DNA from: Paraphysomonas bandaiensis
Lineage: Eukaryota; Protista; Chrysophyceae
Direction: 5' to 3'
NCBI GenBank assembly: GCA_965644295.1
Contig: CBFFRP010000566.1
Coordinates: 1 to 54,312 of the forward strand
Length of the DNA stretch: 54,312 bases
Part shown: piece after piece, positions 1 through 10,972 of the stretch
How positions within the stretch are numbered: position 1 is the first letter of the stretch
Layout of the letters: each line of letters opens with the position of its first letter
Notes under the pieces: generated by a model
Database searches by the model: none
What the model saw: only the letters and a program-made list of their open reading frames with translations
Told to the model about the DNA's origin: nothing
Translations under genes and position numbers: made by a program

Positions 1-2
1 TC

Positions 3-3000
3 TTCCTCCAAGGGGAGATCACGGACATCCCGCAGCACCTTAAACGCCGGTGCCTTCGAGATCGGAGGAGGAGGCTTCAACATCACAGTCGTGTCTGGGA
101 GGCCCACATCCAACACCACCTTCGTAAGAGAACGGCACCTGGACAAACGATTGCCCCAGCTGTGTTCAACATACTGGATCAACGACCTACCCCATGGCTG
201 ATGCGAACACGACAGCCACTAAGGCCCACCTCTGAATCCGCACACCCAGATGCAGTCGACTACTATAGAGCACACCCAGGCGGCGACACCCGATTTCAAA
301 TCCTCCGCGGATGTCAAAAACCCAATATCACCGGCGACAACTCTCAAAGAGGGGTATGGGCAGTGGAGAACATACCGACTGGCACACCACTCTTCCCCTA
401 CGTAGGGCAATACATCACTGGCACACCGTCAGCCAGCAAATACCTCCTTCAACTCCGCGAAGACGAGAAATCTATACAGGCGGAACCCGCCATGGTGGAC
501 TATGGATACGTCGCATTCCGAAAACCCAGTGACCCACTCCCCAAACGAATCCCTCGCGCATTCGGAGCCTGCTGCAATACCATCCCTGTGGAAGACCTCG
601 GCACACGCGTATACAACGCCCGTATTCGTCCCCGGGATGAAAATGACCTCTCAGACTGCATATTCATCGATGCCTGCGCAGACATCCACCCGCAGGAAGA
701 AATCCTTCTGGACTACGGTGACGGCCACCTCATCTCACGCACAAACAAGACACCAGACGAATGTCTTCGCGCCTACAGAGCGTACCTCCGCACGGCAGAG
801 GCAACTGAAACCCACCCGCAGTCGATTCGACGCTCCCCCCGTCTGCGTACCACCGCCACTGCCACTCACAATCCTCGACACCCACAAGGAAGCACCACCA
901 TGAAGGCGTCGGCAGTGACCCCCAGAAAACAGCCAAGAGCCCACACTCTTCCCAAGGCAGCATTTGTCGACGACACCACTGAACAATGGACCTTCTACTC
1001 TCCGTCTGGCCTCATTGCCATGACGCTATACCCCTCAGAGCTACAACGTCTACTTGAACTCTCCAGAGCGTCCGCCACTCGCAGCACTATCAAAACTCTA
1101 GTCGCCACCTGCCTTAAGAAAGGAGAGATATGCACCGCTAGGAAATACACGACAGCTGAGGTTAACACCACCCCTGGTAACGGTTTCTGTGGGATAGGAG
1201 CCCTAGGTCCACTCCTCCCGGAATACTCCACAATACACCCAACCCGACCCACCAAGGGACCACTGCTCAACCCCGATGACCCCACAGACAACGAATACTT
1301 ACAGGAGCTGCTCAACCACAGTCAGGCTGTGATTATATCCCTCCCAGACCAAGTAATCGAAGAGGTAGGAGACAGGGCAGTTATCGAATTCCTGCTTGAG
1401 TTAATCGACGCCTACCGCATAGCTCTCTCCGCTGACGTGCCTACAAAGACAGGTCTCCCACCTCAATACTGGGCTCAAACGGACGCCCTCATGCTCATGG
1501 CCGAAACCCACGGTATTCACATCAGGATATGGCAGGACCCAACGCTCCCCACAGAGCCGGTGTTCCTCAATCCAAATTGGGCCACATGGGCGAGCCACCA
1601 TCGTACCTTCCTTCCAGATACTGCGCGCAAGACCCCAAAGGACATTTTCTGCTGCGACCAACACTTCTTTCTCGACCTGAAGGAACCTGCAGAGGATGAA
1701 ATCCACCGTCTAATGGAACTTCTCCCACACCTCTATGCTGAAAGGCTCGCCCCCTCCCTCCCTTTAGCCCCAGCTCATATCCATGCCGCCCGAACTCAAC
1801 AGGGACCGGAATACGCGTCTGACAGCAGCGGCGACGGCCCGTACACCCGCCCGCATCCCCACAAACACCCACCGACGCAAAATCCGCTCAGGCCACGCCA
1901 GTTTGGACCCGGATACAGTAGTGACGACAGCGGCGATGGCCCGCGCAAGCGACGACCACGCAAACCCCCCAACGCGCCTCAACCACCCATAATCCCAGGA
2001 CACACTCACAAACCCGATGCCCACACCACGACACCCGCACCAGACACCACAAGGCAACCTCCCGGACGGCATCGTCACAACATGACACTTGCTGACTATT
2101 TTCCGCCCATCCCGCCACTCAAGTCTGACACCAGGAGCGCACCCGCGGATCAACCAACACCCTCGCCCACAGAACAAATCTCGATCGTCAACACTCTGGA
2201 CATTCCCCTATCCCAAGACCGGCCAACCCCACGTATGTCATCATCCCCCCCGCCACTACTACCCCAGCCGGCCCGGCGGGAAGCGACTCCGTTCACCAGT
2301 TCACTTACCAACGCCTGGACCGCGTACGACAACACACACCGAGTTGCAGTCTCTCTACGCGAAGACCTGCTACGCCACATCCACAACACCGTCATGGCAG
2401 GCACGAATGCCTGGAGCCAGCTTCTTCAAATTATACACGACGACACAAACTACATACAAGTTGCCAACTTCGACTGGGAGGCTGACTACAGAGCCACAAT
2501 AGCACGCGGCCTAGACGCCCTTGCAGCCACATACCAAATCCATACCGCTCCCTCGCCTGGACATTACCCTAACGTGCCTCTACAAACTGCTGAAGATGCA
2601 AAAGCACTGCATAGGTTCATCGCCCACTTACAACGAATTTGCCTCGCATCCGGACAGGCTCACACAAGCCGACTGCTCCGCACCCTCCAATGCGCGCACA
2701 AGGCTCTAACCACCATGCCCCCGCAGCGATGTGCACTCTCTGCAGATCAGCAAATGGAGATCACTGACGTCCAGACATTGCTCCAGCTTCTTCGTACCAA
2801 CTTCCGACTTTGGACAGAAACCTCAGGCTCATTATCTAGCGGCTGGGTAATGCTACACAACCACCACAACCACGACCCCAAGGCTGCGACCACACACAAC
2901 GTCGCTATTACCAACAAACATTACTTCCTCCTACGAATACCGGACATCGGATCCAAGCTCGACGAGGCGCACTGCAGAGCCAAATCGGCACTCTCTCACT

Positions 3001-5885
3001 TCATCCACCTCGCAGCACAGAGGACCCCACAGCCACACCCCAGAAAGGAGCATCAACCCCAAGCAGCCCTGCCAACGCCCACGCCACTAACGATACCCGC
3101 GGGCCACCTCACCCTTAGCACCACACAGCGGGGTGCCAGAGCCATAACCGCGCGCCTAGTTGGACCGGGCACACACAATTCCCCACGAACAGCCATCCAG
3201 ACAGCTGGGCGTGTGCTACGTGTACACGTAACTACCGCGTCCGTCCAGGCAGCTCACCGCATACCCGCAAACGGGTACTGCGCATACGGAACACTGTACC
3301 GACTGCACACGCTCTGCGTGGGAACGAGACACACAGCCAATCACTGGAATCTGGATCTCCAGAAACCAGAGCATCGACTACACCTAGGCCACTGGCTTGG
3401 CAACCTTAGGACCATAGCACTAGACAGCCCACACTGCACACCAACCATACTTAATAAAACAGAACATGCTATCCACTCCCTAACAGTCAAACATTCCCCC
3501 ACATACACTACTCCACAAGACATTCAACACTGGCTCTCCGTCCGCGAGCTACACATTCTCTCCTCCTACATTGGCCCAGTCACCACATGGACAGCAGACG
3601 GTGACAATATCACAATCGTCGGAATCCCCGACGCACCAATCACTCACAGCCCCGCCTGGACATCCGACGAACTGAGAGATGCCATCACCGACGATCGACC
3701 TCATATTGTTCTGCACGACGCCCACTACTACCACCTTAACCCCAGAGGGCTAGCAGCAGAGCTAGACAACGCACTCCTCGACCTCGAAGCAGCATTTCTG
3801 AGCCCACAACTACACCGACCCACCAGTCCAACAGAACTTAGCACTGGGAACACCGCCCCCCCGGCGCCCCTGCCTCCGAAACAACCCCAGCAGAGCATCA
3901 CCCACAGCACCACACCCTGGCCGCCGACACCAACAAACGGCATGACGACCAACCTCCCACGGAGGGGTCCCCACGTCTCCACACCCTTGACGTCACCCGG
4001 AGACCGCTCCCAACACCGCACATACACGACAGCGGGCACTTCCCCACCTGACGCGCCGCCACACATTCCCCACCTCCGAGATGACCCCGGAGCAAGGAGA
4101 GCCAAAGGAAAGAAAACACGGAACTCAACGCCCGTCCCCACGCGAATACAGCCAGCCCGCACAGCCCGCACCACAAGCTCCTACGCAGAAGACCCCGACG
4201 AAGTCCAAACACACGCCATATACCGCCCACGGGCTACTTTCAACACACTACTCCAAACGGCCCACCCACCCCTCCCGCTCACCTGGGACACAACGCTACG
4301 ATACAAGGTACTAGTGGGCAAGGCAGACACAGTTACCAAGGGGAACGCCCTATATGCGGGAGAGCCAATCCCTGCCCATACCATTATTTCTGAGTACACT
4401 GGACACCGCCTACCCATCACAGAAGCCAGGTCCACCGGTTACACTTCCGACTACCTTGTGCAAGACGCGAAAGGTACATTTGCGATAGACGCAAGGGATA
4501 AACGAAGCAAAACCATACTATGCGCAGCGGGGTACATCAATGATCCGTTACAGGCCAGGGCTGCTAATGTAGAATTCCACACGAAAAAAGACAAAATCTA
4601 CATCAGAACCACACGGAACATTGCGACTCACGAGGAACTACTTGTACACTACGGGTACAGATACTGGCAAGACCCCAAGTGGCCGCTTGAGATCCTACTA
4701 CAAGCGAGAGAGGCATACGCTGACGACGTTGAATTCTGCACGCAGGAGTGGCAAGACCTCATCGCCAGCAAGCAATCACATGCACAGGCGACACCCAAAC
4801 CCCCAGAGCCGAACTACAGCCTGGTGTCATGTACCTCGACCTTCATATTCTCCACATGGAACGTAAACGGTAACCCCTCCAACAACCCTGGAAAAATCGA
4901 AGCTATCCTACACTACATACGCACACACCAAATAGATTGTCTTTACCTGCTCGACGTCCGTCTGTCACAAAACCAGGCACTATACCTTGCTGACTACATC
5001 CAGGACCAGATTCCAGGGGCTCTTGTCTGCAACTTTCTCAACTCAACGCGGAAACAGGGCCCCAACGATCCGCACATGGGAGGAACTATTGCAGTGATCA
5101 GCGAAGCGTGGAAAGGAAGAGTCCGCCACACAGGATCCGACTGCACTGGATTAGGGCTCATCTCTCGAATCGAATTTCACACCGGCAGACCTAACAGAGA
5201 CGAAAGATTCACTGCCATAGGAGTGTACCTCCCCCCCAAGCCTGCGACCGATGGACCCTGCACACTGTGGGCATCACTAAAAGCCTTCGGCAAGAATGCC
5301 CACAGGAACGGCGCCACGGGACCCTATGACATCCTCACGAACATCATATCCAAATGGATCACCAAAGCCAGGGCAAACAACCACACAGTACTAGTTGGCG
5401 GAGATTTCAACGCCACCCTAGAGGGACAAACGGGTAAGAGGGACCTCAGAGGTTTCGCAAGATCCCTGCAGCTAACAGCCCCTCTCATACAAACCCTTGA
5501 CCAGGAGGCACCATACCACACCTTTTACTGGAAAGACCGCGGCATCTCCAGAATAGACCATATACTACATTCTCCCCTTCCTACACACTTTCATAACACT
5601 AGAAATGGATGCCACACATCTGATGCCATCACTGCTGCACCATTTGATCATAGACCGGTCTGGATCCAGATTGACATTAGCGGTACAGGTCCAACCCTTC
5701 CCAAGGAACGGCACCGTCAGATTCCTCCACGGCTCAACATCAACCCTACTGACCAAGACATGGTAGAAGAATTCCAGACCCACCTACACAAACACCACCA
5801 CAAATTGTCCACGTTCCCCACGCACCCCCACCCCGCTGAAAACGCAGCCATAAAACTGGCGCTCCTCCATATCGTATCACCTTAG
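3..5885 (+). CDS. LINE polyprotein N-terminal part: SET - OTU - OTU(degenerate) - OTU - SET - AP endonuclease
   Basis: Frame is open from base 3 (no stop upstream of the called GTG at 162). SET1 ~295-720 (RGVWAVENIPTGT..YVG; EEILLDYG). OTU-like PGNGFC (Cys 1188-1190)...DQHFF (His 1662). OTU-like PANGYC (Cys 3279)...DAHYY (His 3723). SET2 ~4300-4670 (GNALYAGEPIPAHTIISEYTG; AGYIND; EELLVHYGYRYW). APE ~4845-5680 (TWNVNG, GVYLPP, GGDFNA, SRIDHIL, FDHRPV). Confidence 0.85.
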   Translation, partial: FLQGEITDIPQHLKRRCLRDRRRRLQHHSRVWEAHIQHHLRKRTAPGQTIAPAVFNILDQRPTPWLMRTRQPLRPTSESAHPDAVDYYRAHPGGDTRFQILRGCQKPNITGDNSQRGVWAVENIPTGTPLFPYVGQYITGTPSASKYLLQLREDEKSIQAEPAMVDYGYVAFRKPSDPLPKRIPRAFGACCNTIPVEDLGTRVYNARIRPRDENDLSDCIFIDACADIHPQEEILLDYGDGHLISRTNKTPDECLRAYRAYLRTAEATETHPQSIRRSPRLRTTATATHNPRHPQGSTTMKASAVTPRKQPRAHTLPKAAFVDDTTEQWTFYSPSGLIAMTLYPSELQRLLELSRASATRSTIKTLVATCLKKGEICTARKYTTAEVNTTPGNGFCGIGALGPLLPEYSTIHPTRPTKGPLLNPDDPTDNEYLQELLNHSQAVIISLPDQVIEEVGDRAVIEFLLELIDAYRIALSADVPTKTGLPPQYWAQTDALMLMAETHGIHIRIWQDPTLPTEPVFLNPNWATWASHHRTFLPDTARKTPKDIFCCDQHFFLDLKEPAEDEIHRLMELLPHLYAERLAPSLPLAPAHIHAARTQQGPEYASDSSGDGPYTRPHPHKHPPTQNPLRPRQFGPGYSSDDSGDGPRKRRPRKPPNAPQPPIIPGHTHKPDAHTTTPAPDTTRQPPGRHRHNMTLADYFPPIPPLKSDTRSAPADQPTPSPTEQISIVNTLDIPLSQDRPTPRMSSSPPPLLPQPARREATPFTSSLTNAWTAYDNTHRVAVSLREDLLRHIHNTVMAGTNAWSQLLQIIHDDTNYIQVANFDWEADYRATIARGLDALAATYQIHTAPSPGHYPNVPLQTAEDAKALHRFIAHLQRICLASGQAHTSRLLRTLQCAHKALTTMPPQRCALSADQQMEITDVQTLLQLLRTNFRLWTETSGSLSSGWVMLHNHHNHDPKAATTHNVAITNKHYFLLRIPDIGSKLDEAHCRAKSALSHFIHLAAQRTPQPHPRKEHQPQAALPTPTPLTIPAGHLTLSTTQRGARAITARLVGPGTHNSPRTAIQTAGRVLRVHVTTASVQAAHRIPANGYCAYGTLYRLHTLCVGTRHTANHWNLDLQKPEHRLHLGHWLGNLRTIALDSPHCTPTILNKTEHAIHSLTVKHSPTYTTPQDIQHWLSVRELHILSSYIGPVTTWTADGDNITIVGIPDAPITHSPAWTSDELRDAITDDRPHIVLHDAHYYHLNPRGLAAELDNALLDLEAAFLSPQLHRPTSPTELSTGNTAPPAPLPPKQPQQSITHSTTPWPPTPTNGMTTNLPRRGPHVSTPLTSPGDRSQHRTYTTAGTSPPDAPPHIPHLRDDPGARRAKGKKTRNSTPVPTRIQPARTARTTSSYAEDPDEVQTHAIYRPRATFNTLLQTAHPPLPLTWDTTLRYKVLVGKADTVTKGNALYAGEPIPAHTIISEYTGHRLPITEARSTGYTSDYLVQDAKGTFAIDARDKRSKTILCAAGYINDPLQARAANVEFHTKKDKIYIRTTRNIATHEELLVHYGYRYWQDPKWPLEILLQAREAYADDVEFCTQEWQDLIASKQSHAQATPKPPEPNYSLVSCTSTFIFSTWNVNGNPSNNPGKIEAILHYIRTHQIDCLYLLDVRLSQNQALYLADYIQDQIPGALVCNFLNSTRKQGPNDPHMGGTIAVISEAWKGRVRHTGSDCTGLGLISRIEFHTGRPNRDERFTAIGVYLPPKPATDGPCTLWASLKAFGKNAHRNGATGPYDILTNIISKWITKARANNHTVLVGGDFNATLEGQTGKRDLRGFARSLQLTAPLIQTLDQEAPYHTFYWKDRGISRIDHILHSPLPTHFHNTRNGCHTSDAITAAPFDHRPVWIQIDISGTGPTLPKERHRQIPPRLNINPTDQDMVEEFQTHLHKHHHKLSTFPTHPHPAENAAIKLALLHIVSP

Positions 5886-8800
5886 AAGCGGCCCACGACA
5901 CCCGCCACGCGGACAGAACCAAGAAAAACGGCATCCATGCAAAATGCCAGCGAAAACGATCCCGGTTCAAGGATGGCTTCTCCGCCGAAATGAGAGTCCT
6001 GCAAATGGCACTCCACCTGATTGTATATCTCAAACGCAAGCTCTTTACCAGATCCGGCCACCTACACCCCCGTGTCACCGACGCATACTTATACAGCATC
6101 GTCCGGAGAGGAATCTGCAGATGGGAGCGCACCACTGCTGCACTTGACCGCTCATCAGAGGACAACGATCGACCGCCCACAGCCATCATCCGGGCCGCGA
6201 CAGACCCAAGGCAAATGCTAACATGGACCACAACTAACGTCACGGGCAAAACCTTCGACAACCTCCGTGACAGTCTCATGCGGATGCTCCAAGGGAGAGC
6301 CCGAGCTGAAATGAGGAAAAGGATGACCGCCAGAACACACGCCCTCCAAGCCCAACTCGAAACACAACAGATACGCAAGATCCTCCAATCCATCGGACTA
6401 AAGCGGAAGCAGACACCAGCGCTCACCCGTCTCACCCTGGAGGACGGAGCCACGATCACTATTCCATCGGAGATACAGGAAGCCCTGAACAAGCACTTCA
6501 CGGCACACCACGCATTCCCCAAAGGCATGGACCCCACCGCCCACAGATTACACTACGATGACAACTGGTGGCGCGAACTAACCGCCGGTGAGAACCTCCA
6601 CAACCCCCTCCACCCAAACTCCGCTATCCCGATACAACATCATTCCGGACTACGCAAACTATGCAAAACAAAGGTCGGCTCATCCACCTCAGCAAAGATA
6701 CAGGAAGCCCTCAGGCAACAAATTTCGATCCATGAGTTCCACTCCACACTTGATAATATGGCCAAGGACAAAGCACCCGGACCGTCCATGGTCACCACAA
6801 ACATGATAAAAAGTTGGACCCCACAAGTCAAAATAGAAGTACTCGGTCTCCTACAAACGCTCTGGACTCACCGCCACATCCCACACTGGTGGAAAGACAG
6901 AGTCATGACCCCATTACTCAAGAAACCGGGAAACACCTCCCTCAAAAACTTGAGACCGATCGGATTGCTCGAGGTACTCCGTAAACTGATGACACGCATA
7001 ATTACCCACCGACTCCTCCAAATTTGGGAAGACGACGATGTCCTACACCCGGCGCAACACGGTTACAGGTGGAGACACGGAACAGACACTGCCATCCTTC
7101 GTGTACTAGCGGCCACCGAGCTGGCCAAGCTCACAGGAAACGCGAAAATATGCACCTTCTGGGACTTTCAAAAAGCTTTCGACTCCATTGCACCTAACCT
7201 CCTCAAACTCGCGTGGGCGAGACTTGGGGTTCCAGAAGACACAATCAAATGGCTCAGCGAACTCGACTGCGAGGGGCGTACCTACATCTGGACACCGCAC
7301 ATGGCTGACCACATCGACCCCAAAACCCTAGAGGAACTAAGTCAATCCGACGGTTCCTTTCTCCAACACCCCGACATGGGCTTCTCCGCCAACAGAGGCG
7401 TTACACAGGGCGGAACAGAGTCCACAGTCGCATGGATCGTCATCTTCGACATGATTCTCTGCTGGTCTGACCTTAAGGACGACAGTCAGGATAAAGCGTA
7501 CGCGGACGACCTCTCCCAAATAACCAACTCCATTGCCACCGCGCAGATGAAGGCGGACAGACTCTCATCCTTCTGTGCATTCACGGGAATGCAGCTCGCC
7601 ATAGCCAAAACGGAATGCATAGCAATAGGCTCCCCCTTTGAAGTTGAGGCCATGCTAGTCACAGAGCCCACCCTAACCATTAGAGACTGGAACTGGAACC
7701 CGCACACCATCCCCATTAGAGCCACCACAGTCCCCACCAAATACCTCGGAGTTCTACTCCCGTTCTCCTCGAAGGACACCGACTCGTACGCCTGGTGTGT
7801 CGATTACGTCAACACCTCCGCAACACATCTTCGCTACAAATGTGCATCCCCAGACTGTAAACTGTTAGTGCTTAACACACAAGTACTCCCGACACTACTC
7901 TACAAAGCCACCAAAGCCTCCTGGACGTACGACAGATACCTGGACATCGACAAACTCCTTGCACGAGCAGCCAGGAAAGTCCTCCGACTACCCCCAGGAT
8001 ACCCCACAGCCCTCATCTATCTGCCCACGAAATACAAAGGACTTGGCCTGCATAAGTTCTCCACATGGGCCCAGATCCAAAAGTGGCACACACTCCAAAG
8101 GGCCATCACCCTGGGGGGGGAACCCAAGCGAGCCGCCATATCCATCTTAAAACGTCACGATCACAATCGCCCAGACATCGACCTGTACATCACTAGCCTG
8201 GTCCAATGGGGACGTCAGCTCGGGATTCGACTGCAGCCCCCATCCCCGGTCACGCCCCAATTCCGAGAAACCATCGACAAGGTCCAAACCCAACTCCAAC
8301 TGCACAACAATCATCCACACGACTTTCAAGCCATCTTCACTGATGGTTCCTTCACTCGCACAAACCTCACTCCTGCTCATCTCCTCGGCGACGCTCACGT
8401 ACAGCCCGCAACACATTATGGGGGGGCAGCAATTGTCTGGCTCCCACCCAAAACCAACTGGAGCACAGGAATAACCAAAATCCTTCGACTTACAGCCCCT
8501 GAGCATACCTTACCAGGGATAACCCCATACACCTACGAGACCCTGGCAATGTCAGCAGCCCTCACGTTCTCGAAACTCGTATCCCCCACCGTACCTATGT
8601 GCACCGACTGCCGAGCAGTCCAAACACGAACCACGGAAGCTCTCTCTCGTCGGCGGCGGGCCCTCGGCACGAAGCCCCAGGGCATCTTTTACGAATGCCT
8701 CGCCATCGGAAATCACCGACAGCGACCAATACGATGGGTCCGCTCCCATCCAGAACGCCGAACACAAGATCGGAACAACTGGTCCTACAACGACTATGGC

Positions 8801-9994
8801 ATCTACATAGCTGACGCTGCCGCCAGTGGAGAGTGGTCGGCGATCGACAAAATATTAGGCGGCACAAACTACAGCGTGGTCACGACTGAGATCACACACC
8901 TCATCGACGAATTCCTCACGGCCGGCCAATGGCAATGGAGAAGATACGACAAATTCCTCCACACCGACTGTGGACCCCTGCTAGGGGATGTCACCGAACT
9001 CCAACACCAATGGGACCTTCACCAATACATCCTCACGCGTGACGGCACGTACCCCGCAAGCACAAGCCGAGACTCGCAGTACTGGACACGCAGCGGCACC
9101 AGGCTCCCACACAAACTCCATCCCCTCAAGCCCAATAATTCGTCCAACTGCTATGTCCCATTCCACGACCGCATCCGCGAAACTGCATATGTCTGGGACA
9201 AATCATACGCGATGGGCAGAAATAGGGCCAAGGGCAAACATGGAGACGAACTCACAACAGCAGCCAAATGCACAGACTGTGACCACAACCTGGACAACAT
9301 GGCGCATATGCTCCTCCACTGTCCACACCCTGAGATCGCCCAACTACGTGAACATGCCTGCCACACACAGCAAACCCAGCTTACAAAACTCCAAGAGCAA
9401 CGACAACCCATCCCCTGGCTCCGAAACGCCCTACAAAGACTGGCGAGGGCTGCCTGGGATCCCACCACACCCCAGGTTGAAAGATACTGGACCGGACAAC
9501 TAACAGCCTCGCAACTGGCAAATGCTTTCGGACACAACATCTCCACCACGTTACACGACCACCAGTTCCATAAACTCGAGAAATCCGTCACCAAAGTCCT
9601 GCTCCCCCTCTACAATGGAGGAATAAACATGCTCAAAAACAGAGGATGTCGATTTCACAGTAACGATGCGACAACAATGACACCAACCCCGACTCATGCC
9701 AGCTCACAACCATGTCACCCAAACCCTACCACCAACCCGACGATCCTCCAGCTACTTAAAGCAACATCCACCCCCAGAGCCGTGCCCCACACGAGACCCC
9801 GCCCACAACGCAGGCCTGCCAACCCGATCCGGAGGCAGACAACACTCATCTCCGACAGAACCGCACCCACAACTAGTACTCCCAAAATCTCCGCTGATAC
9901 ACATCCACAGAATGGCACGTCACCCCCCACACCCCGACTCGCATGTGGACATGGACCACCAGACACACTACCCAAAGGACGACCACCAGACTAA
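5840..9994 (+). CDS. pol: LINE polyprotein C-terminal part: reverse transcriptase, RNase H, CCHC zinc finger (frameshifted continuation of the upstream ORF; first ATG 5990)
   Basis: RT motifs KAPGPS, RPIGLL, QHGYR, DFQKAFDSI, GVTQG, AYADDL (7499-7510), KYLGV. RNase H FTDGS...YETLA...CTDC...WVRSH...IADAAA (~8330-8825). Zinc finger CTDC-x8-H-x4-C (~9270-9320). Frame is open from 5840 and overlaps the upstream ORF. Confidence 0.92.
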   Translation, partial: KRSHKTGAPPYRITLEAAHDTRHADRTKKNGIHAKCQRKRSRFKDGFSAEMRVLQMALHLIVYLKRKLFTRSGHLHPRVTDAYLYSIVRRGICRWERTTAALDRSSEDNDRPPTAIIRAATDPRQMLTWTTTNVTGKTFDNLRDSLMRMLQGRARAEMRKRMTARTHALQAQLETQQIRKILQSIGLKRKQTPALTRLTLEDGATITIPSEIQEALNKHFTAHHAFPKGMDPTAHRLHYDDNWWRELTAGENLHNPLHPNSAIPIQHHSGLRKLCKTKVGSSTSAKIQEALRQQISIHEFHSTLDNMAKDKAPGPSMVTTNMIKSWTPQVKIEVLGLLQTLWTHRHIPHWWKDRVMTPLLKKPGNTSLKNLRPIGLLEVLRKLMTRIITHRLLQIWEDDDVLHPAQHGYRWRHGTDTAILRVLAATELAKLTGNAKICTFWDFQKAFDSIAPNLLKLAWARLGVPEDTIKWLSELDCEGRTYIWTPHMADHIDPKTLEELSQSDGSFLQHPDMGFSANRGVTQGGTESTVAWIVIFDMILCWSDLKDDSQDKAYADDLSQITNSIATAQMKADRLSSFCAFTGMQLAIAKTECIAIGSPFEVEAMLVTEPTLTIRDWNWNPHTIPIRATTVPTKYLGVLLPFSSKDTDSYAWCVDYVNTSATHLRYKCASPDCKLLVLNTQVLPTLLYKATKASWTYDRYLDIDKLLARAARKVLRLPPGYPTALIYLPTKYKGLGLHKFSTWAQIQKWHTLQRAITLGGEPKRAAISILKRHDHNRPDIDLYITSLVQWGRQLGIRLQPPSPVTPQFRETIDKVQTQLQLHNNHPHDFQAIFTDGSFTRTNLTPAHLLGDAHVQPATHYGGAAIVWLPPKTNWSTGITKILRLTAPEHTLPGITPYTYETLAMSAALTFSKLVSPTVPMCTDCRAVQTRTTEALSRRRRALGTKPQGIFYECLAIGNHRQRPIRWVRSHPERRTQDRNNWSYNDYGIYIADAAASGEWSAIDKILGGTNYSVVTTEITHLIDEFLTAGQWQWRRYDKFLHTDCGPLLGDVTELQHQWDLHQYILTRDGTYPASTSRDSQYWTRSGTRLPHKLHPLKPNNSSNCYVPFHDRIRETAYVWDKSYAMGRNRAKGKHGDELTTAAKCTDCDHNLDNMAHMLLHCPHPEIAQLREHACHTQQTQLTKLQEQRQPIPWLRNALQRLARAAWDPTTPQVERYWTGQLTASQLANAFGHNISTTLHDHQFHKLEKSVTKVLLPLYNGGINMLKNRGCRFHSNDATTMTPTPTHASSQPCHPNPTTNPTILQLLKATSTPRAVPHTRPRPQRRPANPIRRQTTLISDRTAPTTSTPKISADTHPQNGTSPPTPRLACGHGPPDTLPKGRPPD

Positions 9995-10177
9995 ACTTAA
10001 CACAAGGGATGGTTGCACCAAGGTGCTTGCAGCAATGCACAAGCAGTCCCGAGATAACTGAGCATTTCATATTTTGTGTTACAATTAGTCTAAAGTAATA
10101 GCTAGATAAATGCAACGAGTTCTCTCATGTAATAATCAGATCTATTTATACGGAAGAGTCCTCTACCGGCGGAAGCA

Positions 10178-10972
10178 ATGGATTTAGTGGCAAAAGGGAC
10201 GCGGCATGAGCATACCGAGAAGGAACAGCTTATAGTAGATAACTTTCCATATCGGCCGCTGATAGGTGCATTACTATATCTATCGATGAACACGAGGCCG
10301 GATATTGCCTATGCAGTGGGAGTACTGTCTCGGTTCAGTAATAAGGTGAATATTGAAGTATGCAAGCTATTAACACACGTATGGCAATATATTCGTGGTT
10401 CTATTGACAAAGGGATTCAATATGGGAGTAGACGGTTCGACTTCCATATGTTTACTGACGCGGATTGGGCGGGAGACCAGATCTCCAGGAAGTCCACGTC
10501 GGGGTACGTTGGGTTTGCAGCGGGAGGGCCTATAGTCTGGCAGTCCAAACTGCAGACGACAGTGGCAACGTCAAGCATGCAGTCTGAGTATCAATGTATT
10601 TACTCGGGTCTCCAAGAAGTGCTATGGGTTCGGGGGGAGACGGGTGAGATTAAGTTGAGGCTCATCAAACCCACACCATTCTTCATCGACAGTCAGAGTG
10701 CCCAGGATTTGGCCGAAAACCCAGTGTTTCACAAGAAGTCGAAGCACATTGAGATTAAGTATCACATGGTGAGAGAGCACGTGGATCCCAATCAGTTCAA
10801 TACGATTAAGTTAGTGCATGTGCATACATCGCAACAAGCAGCAGATATTTATACAAAGTCATTGGTTGGTTTATCATATATGGAGCAGAGAAAGAGAAAT
10901 CTTGGAGAGAAAATTAAGAGTTCCACTGAAGTGATTAATGAGGGACCAAGGGATAAAAGAAGACGCAAGTAG
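10178..10972 (+). pseudogene. pol: 3' remnant of a Ty1/Copia pol (RT C-terminus + RNase H), truncated by the LINE
   Basis: YRPLIGALLYLSMNTRPDIAYAV, FTDADWAGD, RKSTSG, SSMQSEY, IDSQSA, KHIEIKYH, ADIYTK are canonical Copia RT-tether/RNase H motifs. Confidence 0.9.

Follow-up and report, generated by a model that had tools for sequence, protein, structure and literature searches.

A giant APE-type LINE of Paraphysomonas bandaiensis encodes SET domains and putatively OTU-like cysteine/histidine modules ahead of its endonuclease

A contig of the marine chrysophyte Paraphysomonas bandaiensis (CBFFRP010000566.1, assembly GCA_965644295.1) opens with a long interspersed nuclear element (LINE) in which SET domains and cysteine/histidine modules reminiscent of OTU deubiquitinases precede the endonuclease (APE) and the reverse transcriptase (RT). 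The locus raises the question of whether these accessory domains are part of the retrotransposon or of a neighboring host gene, and what they might contribute to it. The window analyzed here is the entire 54-kb contig (54,312 nucleotides) of a 62.5-Mb assembly, and all window features described below lie on its forward (+) strand. The element, a giant APE-type LINE copy assigned to family A, occupies positions 1-10150, with its 5' end cut by the contig end. As the original prediction had proposed, the accessory domains were found to belong to the element rather than to a host neighbor. The anatomy laid out below, with the accessory half as a selected and integral part of the LINE, is likely to be correct.

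Two long open reading frames (ORFs) were identified in the window copy. ORF A (3-5885; 1,960 amino acids [aa]) is open at the left edge and encodes, in this order, a first SET domain (SET1), Cys/His module 1, linkers, modules 2 and 3, a second SET domain (SET2), and the APE domain. ORF B (5990-9994; 1,334 aa) encodes the RT, RNase H-like motifs, and a C-terminal CCHC zinc knuckle. The single reading frame that had been predicted was not found in this copy, as two extra bases (AT within ATAT, 5869-5870) place ORF A and ORF B in different frames and create a stop at 5883-5885. The extra bases are missing in all five of the other genomic copies aligned (alignment A1), and without them the APE frame continues directly into that of the RT. 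Window positions 1-6000 are covered by contigs from four public sequencing runs, where the two bases were missing at all depth in runs X16 and X6 and at about half of the depth in runs X18 and X1. Because part of the run depth carries it, the 2-base variant is real and limited to some copies, and because it breaks the frame, the window copy cannot make the full protein. Uninterrupted open frames of 3,731, 3,021, and 2,795 aa were found in the intact copies C644, C440, and C143, respectively, the first of which agrees with a predicted protein of more than 3,300 aa; in C440 and C143, Pfam identified SET, APE, and RVT_1 all in one frame. The window copy is best explained as a recent insertion of a giant APE-type LINE with a single ORF, its frame broken and its 5' side truncated by the contig edge.

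Composition and copy ends delimited the element further. The C-/A-rich strand bias, which had been described as continuous, was unbroken over positions 1-10000 (GC skew -0.21 to -0.35, AT skew +0.19 to +0.39) and dropped off sharply at approximately 10000. The 3' end of the LINE was located at approximately 10150 and not at 9994 as first proposed, while the left side runs off the contig edge. The 3' untranslated region (UTR; 9995-10150) contains a short palindrome, and its end is common to the copies, which terminate in ...TCTATTTATA (window position 10150) and lack a poly(A) tail. Genomic copies share this one 3' end, start at many different 5' points, and have no long terminal repeats. The first 6 kb of the window had 45 matches in the genome, and the 3' 4.4 kb of the LINE had 540 first-look candidates, compared with a handful for the 5' end, most of these copies being 5'-truncated. 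The copy C644, which is 96-97% identical to the window LINE, reaches 3,317 bp further upstream; relative to C644, the window copy lacks approximately 400 codons and the 5' leader.

The order of module 1, linker, module 2, module 3, SET, APE, and RT was common to at least four diverged families in the genome. Family A includes the window copy, C644, and at least 10 copies in all; family B includes C426, C32, and the metagenome contig L019; family C includes C440, C132, and at least 40 more copies; and family D includes C143 and C116. The same domain order was observed in at least 40 copies of families C and D and in independent metagenome contigs from other samples. The family B relative P0001/L019 was 49% identical over 1,442 aa, and relatives in general were found in marine and seawater metagenomes. 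More distant ones included P0008, with a SET domain ahead of an RT that is 36% identical, and L032, a 12-kb contig of the Joint Genome Institute (JGI) with an RT identity of 38%. The latter encodes a YSSDITGDGP linker, two Cys/His modules (A10 profile, E 9e-16), a SET domain (A8 profile, E 5e-29; Pfam, 36.9 bits), an APE, and an RT. The upstream half thus accompanies the RT in at least four families and in L032, as had been anticipated for an element-borne region.

The ratio of nonsynonymous to synonymous substitutions (dN/dS), calculated pairwise between subfamilies by the Nei-Gojobori method (NG86), was 0.10 for SET1 (against subfamily L015), 0.11 for module 1, approximately 0.3 for module 2, 0.14-0.20 for module 3, and 0.08-0.09 for SET2. 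The corresponding values were 0.10-0.12 for APE, 0.06-0.08 for RT, and 0.3-0.5 for spacers and linkers. The part from module 1 to SET2 is therefore under purifying selection, with a constraint like that of APE and RT; the SET domains and modules 1 and 3, for which such selection had been proposed as a check, fell within 0.08-0.20. The accessory domains are integral to the element because they occur in many copies, show 5' truncation, lie in uninterrupted SET-APE-RT frames, are conserved across families at 49% identity or less, and evolve at these low ratios.

An artifactual arrangement, whether a misassembly, a one-off chimera with a host SET or OTU gene, or adjacency to a host gene, could be suspected from the position of the window copy at a contig end and from the ORF split between APE and RT. 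Such an explanation is extremely improbable given the same order in at least 10 copies of family A, at least 40 copies of families C and D, and the independent metagenome contigs, the uninterrupted frames of intact copies, and the run contigs that span the whole of positions 1-6000. Misassembly, chimera, and host-gene adjacency are excluded because copies, intact frames, selection, and relatives elsewhere all agree. Two observations stand on the other side of the favored account. No obvious target-site duplication was visible by eye at the truncated copy C505, and none can be read for the window copy because its 5' end is off the contig; in addition, no public run with contigs of the element is on record as RNA.

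Among the public proteins, P0009 is 89% identical to part of the LINE and is labeled as belonging to a Nitrospiraceae metagenome-assembled genome (MAG). The label probably reflects eukaryotic contamination of a marine bacterial bin.

The core of the element is that of an APE-type LINE. The APE domain (4854-5582; Pfam PF03372 Exo_endo_phos, 45.1 bits) starts 66 aa after SET2, and the RT (6920-7753; Pfam PF00078 RVT_1, 68.3 bits) carries the catalytic box YADD at 7499-7510. Downstream, motifs reading D-E-D-H-D in RNase H order were found at 8333-8821, followed by a C-terminal CCHC knuckle of the form CX2C...HX4C at 9269-9322 (Pfam zf-RVT, E 0.15). For the RNase H, the main indication is a relative with 42% identity over the region, in which Pfam RNase_H reached an E of 7.8e-4, below the cut-off; an RNase H downstream of the RT is probable from these motifs. 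Of the three downstream domains originally predicted, the RT was thus recovered by Pfam, while the RNase H and the CCHC knuckle were weakly supported motif readings. The nearest named RTs were Jockey/X-element-like animal proteins, at 21-29% identity. RNase H is known from several LINE clades, including the I-group, L1 of plants, Proto1, and also Dualen/RandI (PMC4640811). The order of APE, RT, RNase H-like motifs, and CCHC knuckle is like that of APE-type LINEs with an RNase H and a C-terminal zinc knuckle, and the 5'-truncated copies with a common 3' end are likewise shared with this group and suggest target-primed reverse transcription. In contrast to these LINEs, the family described here has approximately 1,600 aa of conserved accessory domains N-terminal to APE, no recognizable ORF1, and neither a poly(A) nor a simple-repeat tail.

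Both SET domains were identified with Pfam PF00856 close to where they had been predicted (approximately 295-720 and 4300-4670). SET1 was found at 348-719 with 27.0 bits and SET2 at 4341-4655 with 39.7 bits, against a cut-off of 22.4, and the distance of 66 aa from SET2 to APE compares with about 60 aa in the prediction. SET1 occurred only in family A and its subfamilies. SET2 is the accessory domain that was present in every related family, and between families with an overall identity of 49%, its own identity is 74%. A SET2 profile built from six lineages matched KMT2D, KMT2C, SETD7, EZH2, and PR domains in the PDB (E 1e-9 to 1e-5, with the first three at E 1e-9 to 1e-7), and SET2 also matched the Pfam model PRDM2_PR (33.7 bits). 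The C-terminal motif with the catalytic Tyr is kept as EEILLDYG (696-719) in SET1 and EELLVHYG (4632-4655) in SET2. In addition, E125, E126, Y131, and G132 were invariant in the SET alignments A7 and A8, and the Asn of SET2 and several glycines were invariant across families. As judged from these alignments, conservation extends to the SET fold and to much of its active site.

Whether this conservation reflects catalysis is less certain. The His of the NH(S/C) motif in the S-adenosylmethionine (SAM) pocket is required in well-studied SET enzymes, and the absence of this motif from both SET domains argues against an enzymatic role. In SET2, N-D-P (4530-4550) was aligned to the N-H-S of KMT2D; SET1, which lacks the Asn as well, has V-E at the columns of the NH dyad (within 570-596; alignment A7); and the SET domain of L032 has N-E-A. 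Because both SET domains of the window copy lack the canonical dyad, SET catalysis and the role of a "chromatin writer" are unproven. A real methyltransferase is a possible but tentative reading of SET2, and so is a non-catalytic chromatin tether. The tether reading can be extended to both SET domains as pseudo-enzymes that grip histone tails or nucleosomes and choose or hold the integration site, like chromoviral chromodomains, and in this broader form it is a serious, though minority, alternative. It is favored by the replacement of the dyad (N-D in SET2, N-E in L032, and V-E in SET1) amid otherwise strongly conserved fold motifs, by the direct fusion of SET2 to the DNA-nicking domain in every family, and by the match to PRDM2_PR, as many PR domains show no detectable activity. 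The invariance across families of the Tyr of EELxxxYG and of the Asn (A8) speaks for an enzyme instead, and some PR/SET enzymes that lack the His, such as PRDM9, are active. The dN/dS of 0.08 fits either reading.

Loci outside the LINE-family coordinates were also matched by the SET2 profile, with 46 and about 80 bits, in other multicopy long open frames. These included C252:2130-2489, C432:239123-239482, and loci on C210, C119, C123, C201, and C191, with open frames of 1,526 aa, and further matches were located at C476:5041-5445, C654:17875-18252, and C661:12524-12943.

The region between the SET domains contains three modules that share an arrangement of a Cys box, a helix-strand motif, and a His box. 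Module 1 (1020-1772; originally "OTU1") has the Cys box TPGNGFCG at 1170-1193, the helix-strand motif at 1467-1532, and the His box at 1656-1676, and it is conserved across families at 35-47% identity (alignment A5). Module 2 (2295-3002; "mid") is degenerate, with the Cys replaced (ARGLDALAAT, 2502-2531) and the His box kept (2913-2933). Module 3 (3120-3827; "OTU2") has the Cys box IPANGYCAYG at 3261-3290 and the His box at 3714-3737. A BLASTP comparison of ORF A with itself identified no internal repeats, and Smith-Waterman alignment with shuffles gave z-scores of only 2.4-4.7. Because these comparisons are too weak, the modules are linked by profile-profile comparison only. Module 2 was identified as a paralogue of module 1 (hhalign of A6 against A5, E 3.2e-10), the alignment extending over 154 columns between the Cys box and the His box, both included. 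A joint profile of modules 1 and 2 matched module 3 over 165 collinear columns (E 1.8e-4), and all three elements of the arrangement were in register, the helix-strand motif reading W...E/D...L-x-A...I-x-I.

An affinity to OTU proteases was indicated for module 1 by the language-model features of Atlas, where 78 of the 100 nearest named clusters were OTU (PF02338), with a score of 0.94. The match comprised 176-192 of 256 shared features with a recognition value of 2332, above the threshold of the tool, and the nearest OTU clusters were mostly from giant viruses (Nucleocytoviricota). In their order and spacing, the three motifs of the modules also resemble those of cellular and giant-virus OTU deubiquitinases. 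That all three modules are diverged cysteine-protease domains of the papain-like OTU family is moderately likely, and the label "OTU deubiquitinase" is partly and indirectly supported by the language-model match of module 1 together with the profile-profile links.

A number of results weigh against this assignment. The direct profile comparison of module 1 with module 3 was not significant (E 0.14). No Pfam match to OTU or any other protease was found at E up to 10 for any module in any family member, in scans that covered whole ORFs, cut-out segments, and every member of the module 1 alignment. A whole-genome scan with PF02338 matched 10 other loci, none of which was in a LINE, and PDB sequence searches with the profiles of modules 1 and 3 returned only chance-level matches. 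The module 1 alignment yielded nothing at E up to 10 in a word-indexed search, and a JGI metagenome scan yielded nothing for module 3. The Atlas features of module 3, whether whole or trimmed, yielded leucine-rich repeat-like noise below 0.9 and no OTU. AlphaFold2 models of modules 1 and 3 with family alignments reached predicted local distance difference test (pLDDT) values of only 40.8 and 40.4, and the lack of a Foldseek match is uninformative because of this pLDDT of about 40. On the side of OTU-likeness, these low-confidence models show a helix just after the Cys box and place the His box within a strand. Finally, textbook OTUs have an Asp or Asn two positions after the His, where the modules have an aromatic residue (H-F-F-L-D in module 1 and H-Y-Y-H-L-N in module 3). 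The modules are thus unlike OTU deubiquitinases in their lack of profile-level similarity and of an Asp/Asn at His+2, in their three tandem copies, and in that one or two of the three are degenerate in each lineage. Of the original claim of OTU-like Cys/His segments, the real and conserved segments and the degenerate middle copy stood, while no OTU profile or fold match was found; the profile and fold checks proposed for it recovered PF00856 for the SET domains only.

The distribution of the Cys and His residues among lineages bears on whether the modules are catalytic. At the level of motifs, both residues were kept by modules 1 and 3 in nearly all aligned copies across families. Module 2 retains the Cys along with the His in family B and L032, but its Cys was lost in families A and C. 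Members of the abundant C440 subfamily lack the half of module 1 that holds the Cys. Module 3 had both residues in families A-D and was not detected by its profile in L032. In every lineage, one module or more retained the Cys as well as the His, and this complementary loss fits the expectation if at least one catalytic module is needed.

Alternatively, the modules may not be OTU proteases at all but a lineage-specific domain, such as an ORF1-like RNA-binding or chaperone domain or a zinc- or protein-binding scaffold, in which the Cys and His are structural or coincidental. The lack of any OTU profile, PDB, or fold match would be expected in this case. In addition, an exhaustive search of 1.84 billion representatives with the module 3 profile returned only two fragments, both of the same element family. 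The element also lacks a recognizable ORF1 or gag, as the 700-aa ORF of C644 has no match in Pfam and is without a counterpart in families C and D. In the C440 type, which is the most abundant subfamily, module 1 has lost its Cys half and module 2 its Cys. The alternative is nevertheless rather unlikely in view of the strong feature match of module 1 to OTU clusters (78 of 100), of the OTU order in which all modules show the Cys motif P-x-[ND]-G-x-C, the helix-strand motif, and the His motif H-[FY]-[FY], and of the retention of at least one module with both residues in every lineage.

A regular-expression scan of the translations identified two copies of a linker motif, [GE][YF]xSDxSGDGP, at 1809-1943, each followed by a basic stretch. 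Three copies were found in C644 (the two in the window and a third upstream), and one each in family B, family C, and L032. The motif recurs at module boundaries, and the surrounding spacer is fast-evolving (dN/dS 0.53). The motif is a candidate processing site or localization signal.

Intact copies of the family encode one polyprotein of approximately 3,400-3,700 aa with the order [SET1], module 1, SSDxSGDGP/basic linkers, module 2, module 3, SET2, APE, RT, RNase H-like motifs, and zinc knuckle. Under the favored reading, the element would move by ordinary target-primed reverse transcription, and SET2, tethered 66 aa from the endonuclease, would come to lie at the nucleosome where the DNA is nicked. 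At this site, it may methylate a lysine, on a histone tail or on a protein of the element or host, or merely grip the histone tail. With at least one module that appears catalytically equipped in every lineage, the modules may act as a deubiquitinase-like eraser guarding the ribonucleoprotein (RNP) or its chromatin target, or as a polyprotein protease cutting at the conserved linkers. In its boldest form, the proposal holds that the LINE carries its own chromatin writer and ubiquitin eraser, such that new copies are licensed for transcription and escape host silencing. SET2 would then mark the nucleosome at the integration site or the chromatin of the element itself, an OTU-type module would strip a ubiquitin or ubiquitin-like mark, and family A would have a doubled writer. 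The nearest solved relatives of SET2 are H3K4 methyltransferases. This combined scenario appears quite unlikely. Of the writer and eraser originally put forward, the SET profile match stood, the NH dyad was absent, and no OTU profile or fold match was found.

The element was compared with other mobile elements that carry accessory domains. Ulp1-type proteases are found in the NeSL and Utopia LINEs, which encode a restriction-like endonuclease (RLE) (PMC4640811). These elements are similar in that their polyprotein, too, carries an N-terminal protease-like domain of the papain superfamily. In contrast, they are RLE-type, with a single profile-recognized Ulp1 (C48) and no SET, while the element described here has three tandem modules that are OTU-like at best, in addition to SET. 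In Helentrons and in the proto-Helentron of Phytophthora infestans, SET and OTU are encoded by ORFs of their own, next to an APE-type endonuclease (PMC4067079). They too are mobile elements with SET, an OTU-like cysteine protease, and an APE-type endonuclease, but they are rolling-circle DNA transposons with Rep/helicase, whereas here an RT is present and all domains are fused in one frame. No Pfam domain of a Rep (HUH) nuclease or superfamily-1 helicase was found in ORF A, ORF B, or the intact ORFs of C440 and C143.

Capture of epigenetic domains by retroelements has also been described, including DNA methyltransferases (DNMT) in dinoflagellate and charophyte retroelements (PMC5890265), a methyl-CpG-binding domain (MBD) in arthropod Copia (PMC6673714), and chromodomains in other retrotransposons. 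The likeness to these lies in a host epigenetic domain aboard the element, with silencing evasion or the choice of a chromatin target as the proposed use; the difference lies in the fusion of SET, of which family A has two, to a LINE endonuclease and protease-like modules. A survey of 172 genomes counted transposable element (TE) fusions including SET in aggregate, with SETMAR as an example, and did not describe the present design (bioRxiv 10.1101/2021.11.30.470311). Full-text searches of the literature turned up no LINE in which SET is combined with OTU-like modules, in agreement with the original prediction, although TE-borne SET and OTU have precedents in Helentrons and TE-SET fusions. The finding is thus a LINE with captured accessory domains, which is a known kind, of a SET and OTU-like design that was not found described.

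LINEs are usually minimal, with ORF1 and APE-RT, while approximately half of the polyprotein of more than 3,400 aa is accessory here and under the constraint that also acts on the endonuclease and RT. In all families, as well as in relatives from other marine samples, the nuclease is fused to a domain that resembles histone methyltransferases. Should either activity prove real, the element would offer a tractable natural case of a retroelement that manipulates host chromatin or ubiquitin signaling through its own protein, in parallel to the DNMT, MBD, and chromodomain retrotransposons and to the SET and OTU genes of Helentrons. There are also consequences for annotation, as marine metagenomes are rich in these elements, which are wrongly binned with bacterial MAGs and whose SET domains can pass for chromatin genes of the host.

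Additional observations were made upstream of the large frame. In C644, a 700-aa ORF (L001 11-2113) with a similar C-rich bias lies in the same frame, one stop before the large frame. It had no Pfam match and no homologue upstream of the family C and D copies, and it was found at only two to three loci. The copy C408 starts 63 bp after the stop of this ORF, where it adjoins AT-rich, host-like DNA. The 700-aa ORF may be an ORF1 specific to this family, or it may be an element in its own right. In the family A leader (L001 approximately 2176-3100), which lies beyond the left edge of the window, the translation shows two diverged units of about 130 codons, like the promoter monomers of LINE leaders; the corresponding duplication of about 400 bp was not reported by Tandem Repeats Finder.

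At the other end of the element, an open frame with motifs of a Ty1/Copia-type RT-RNase H was found at 10154-10972, directly after the LINE 3' end. The ATG-started ORF within it (10178-10969) had no Pfam match at E 0.001. Because a Copia-type pol frame adjoins its 3' end, the LINE was probably inserted into a Copia element.

Partial copies were found elsewhere in the genome. At L030 (C199) 3075-4280 (- strand) and about eight similar loci, 406-aa open frames reproduce the 5' end of the C440 type. In these, an N-terminus that is new precedes the half of module 1 with the His box and the linker motif, and the frames probably represent either 3'-deleted copies or solo 5' fragments of the C440-type subfamily. 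Similarly, pieces of 180 bp identical to the end of the family C 3' UTR were found at L014 (C363) 1132-1311 and at several other loci, and these scattered pieces are extreme 5'-truncated insertions.

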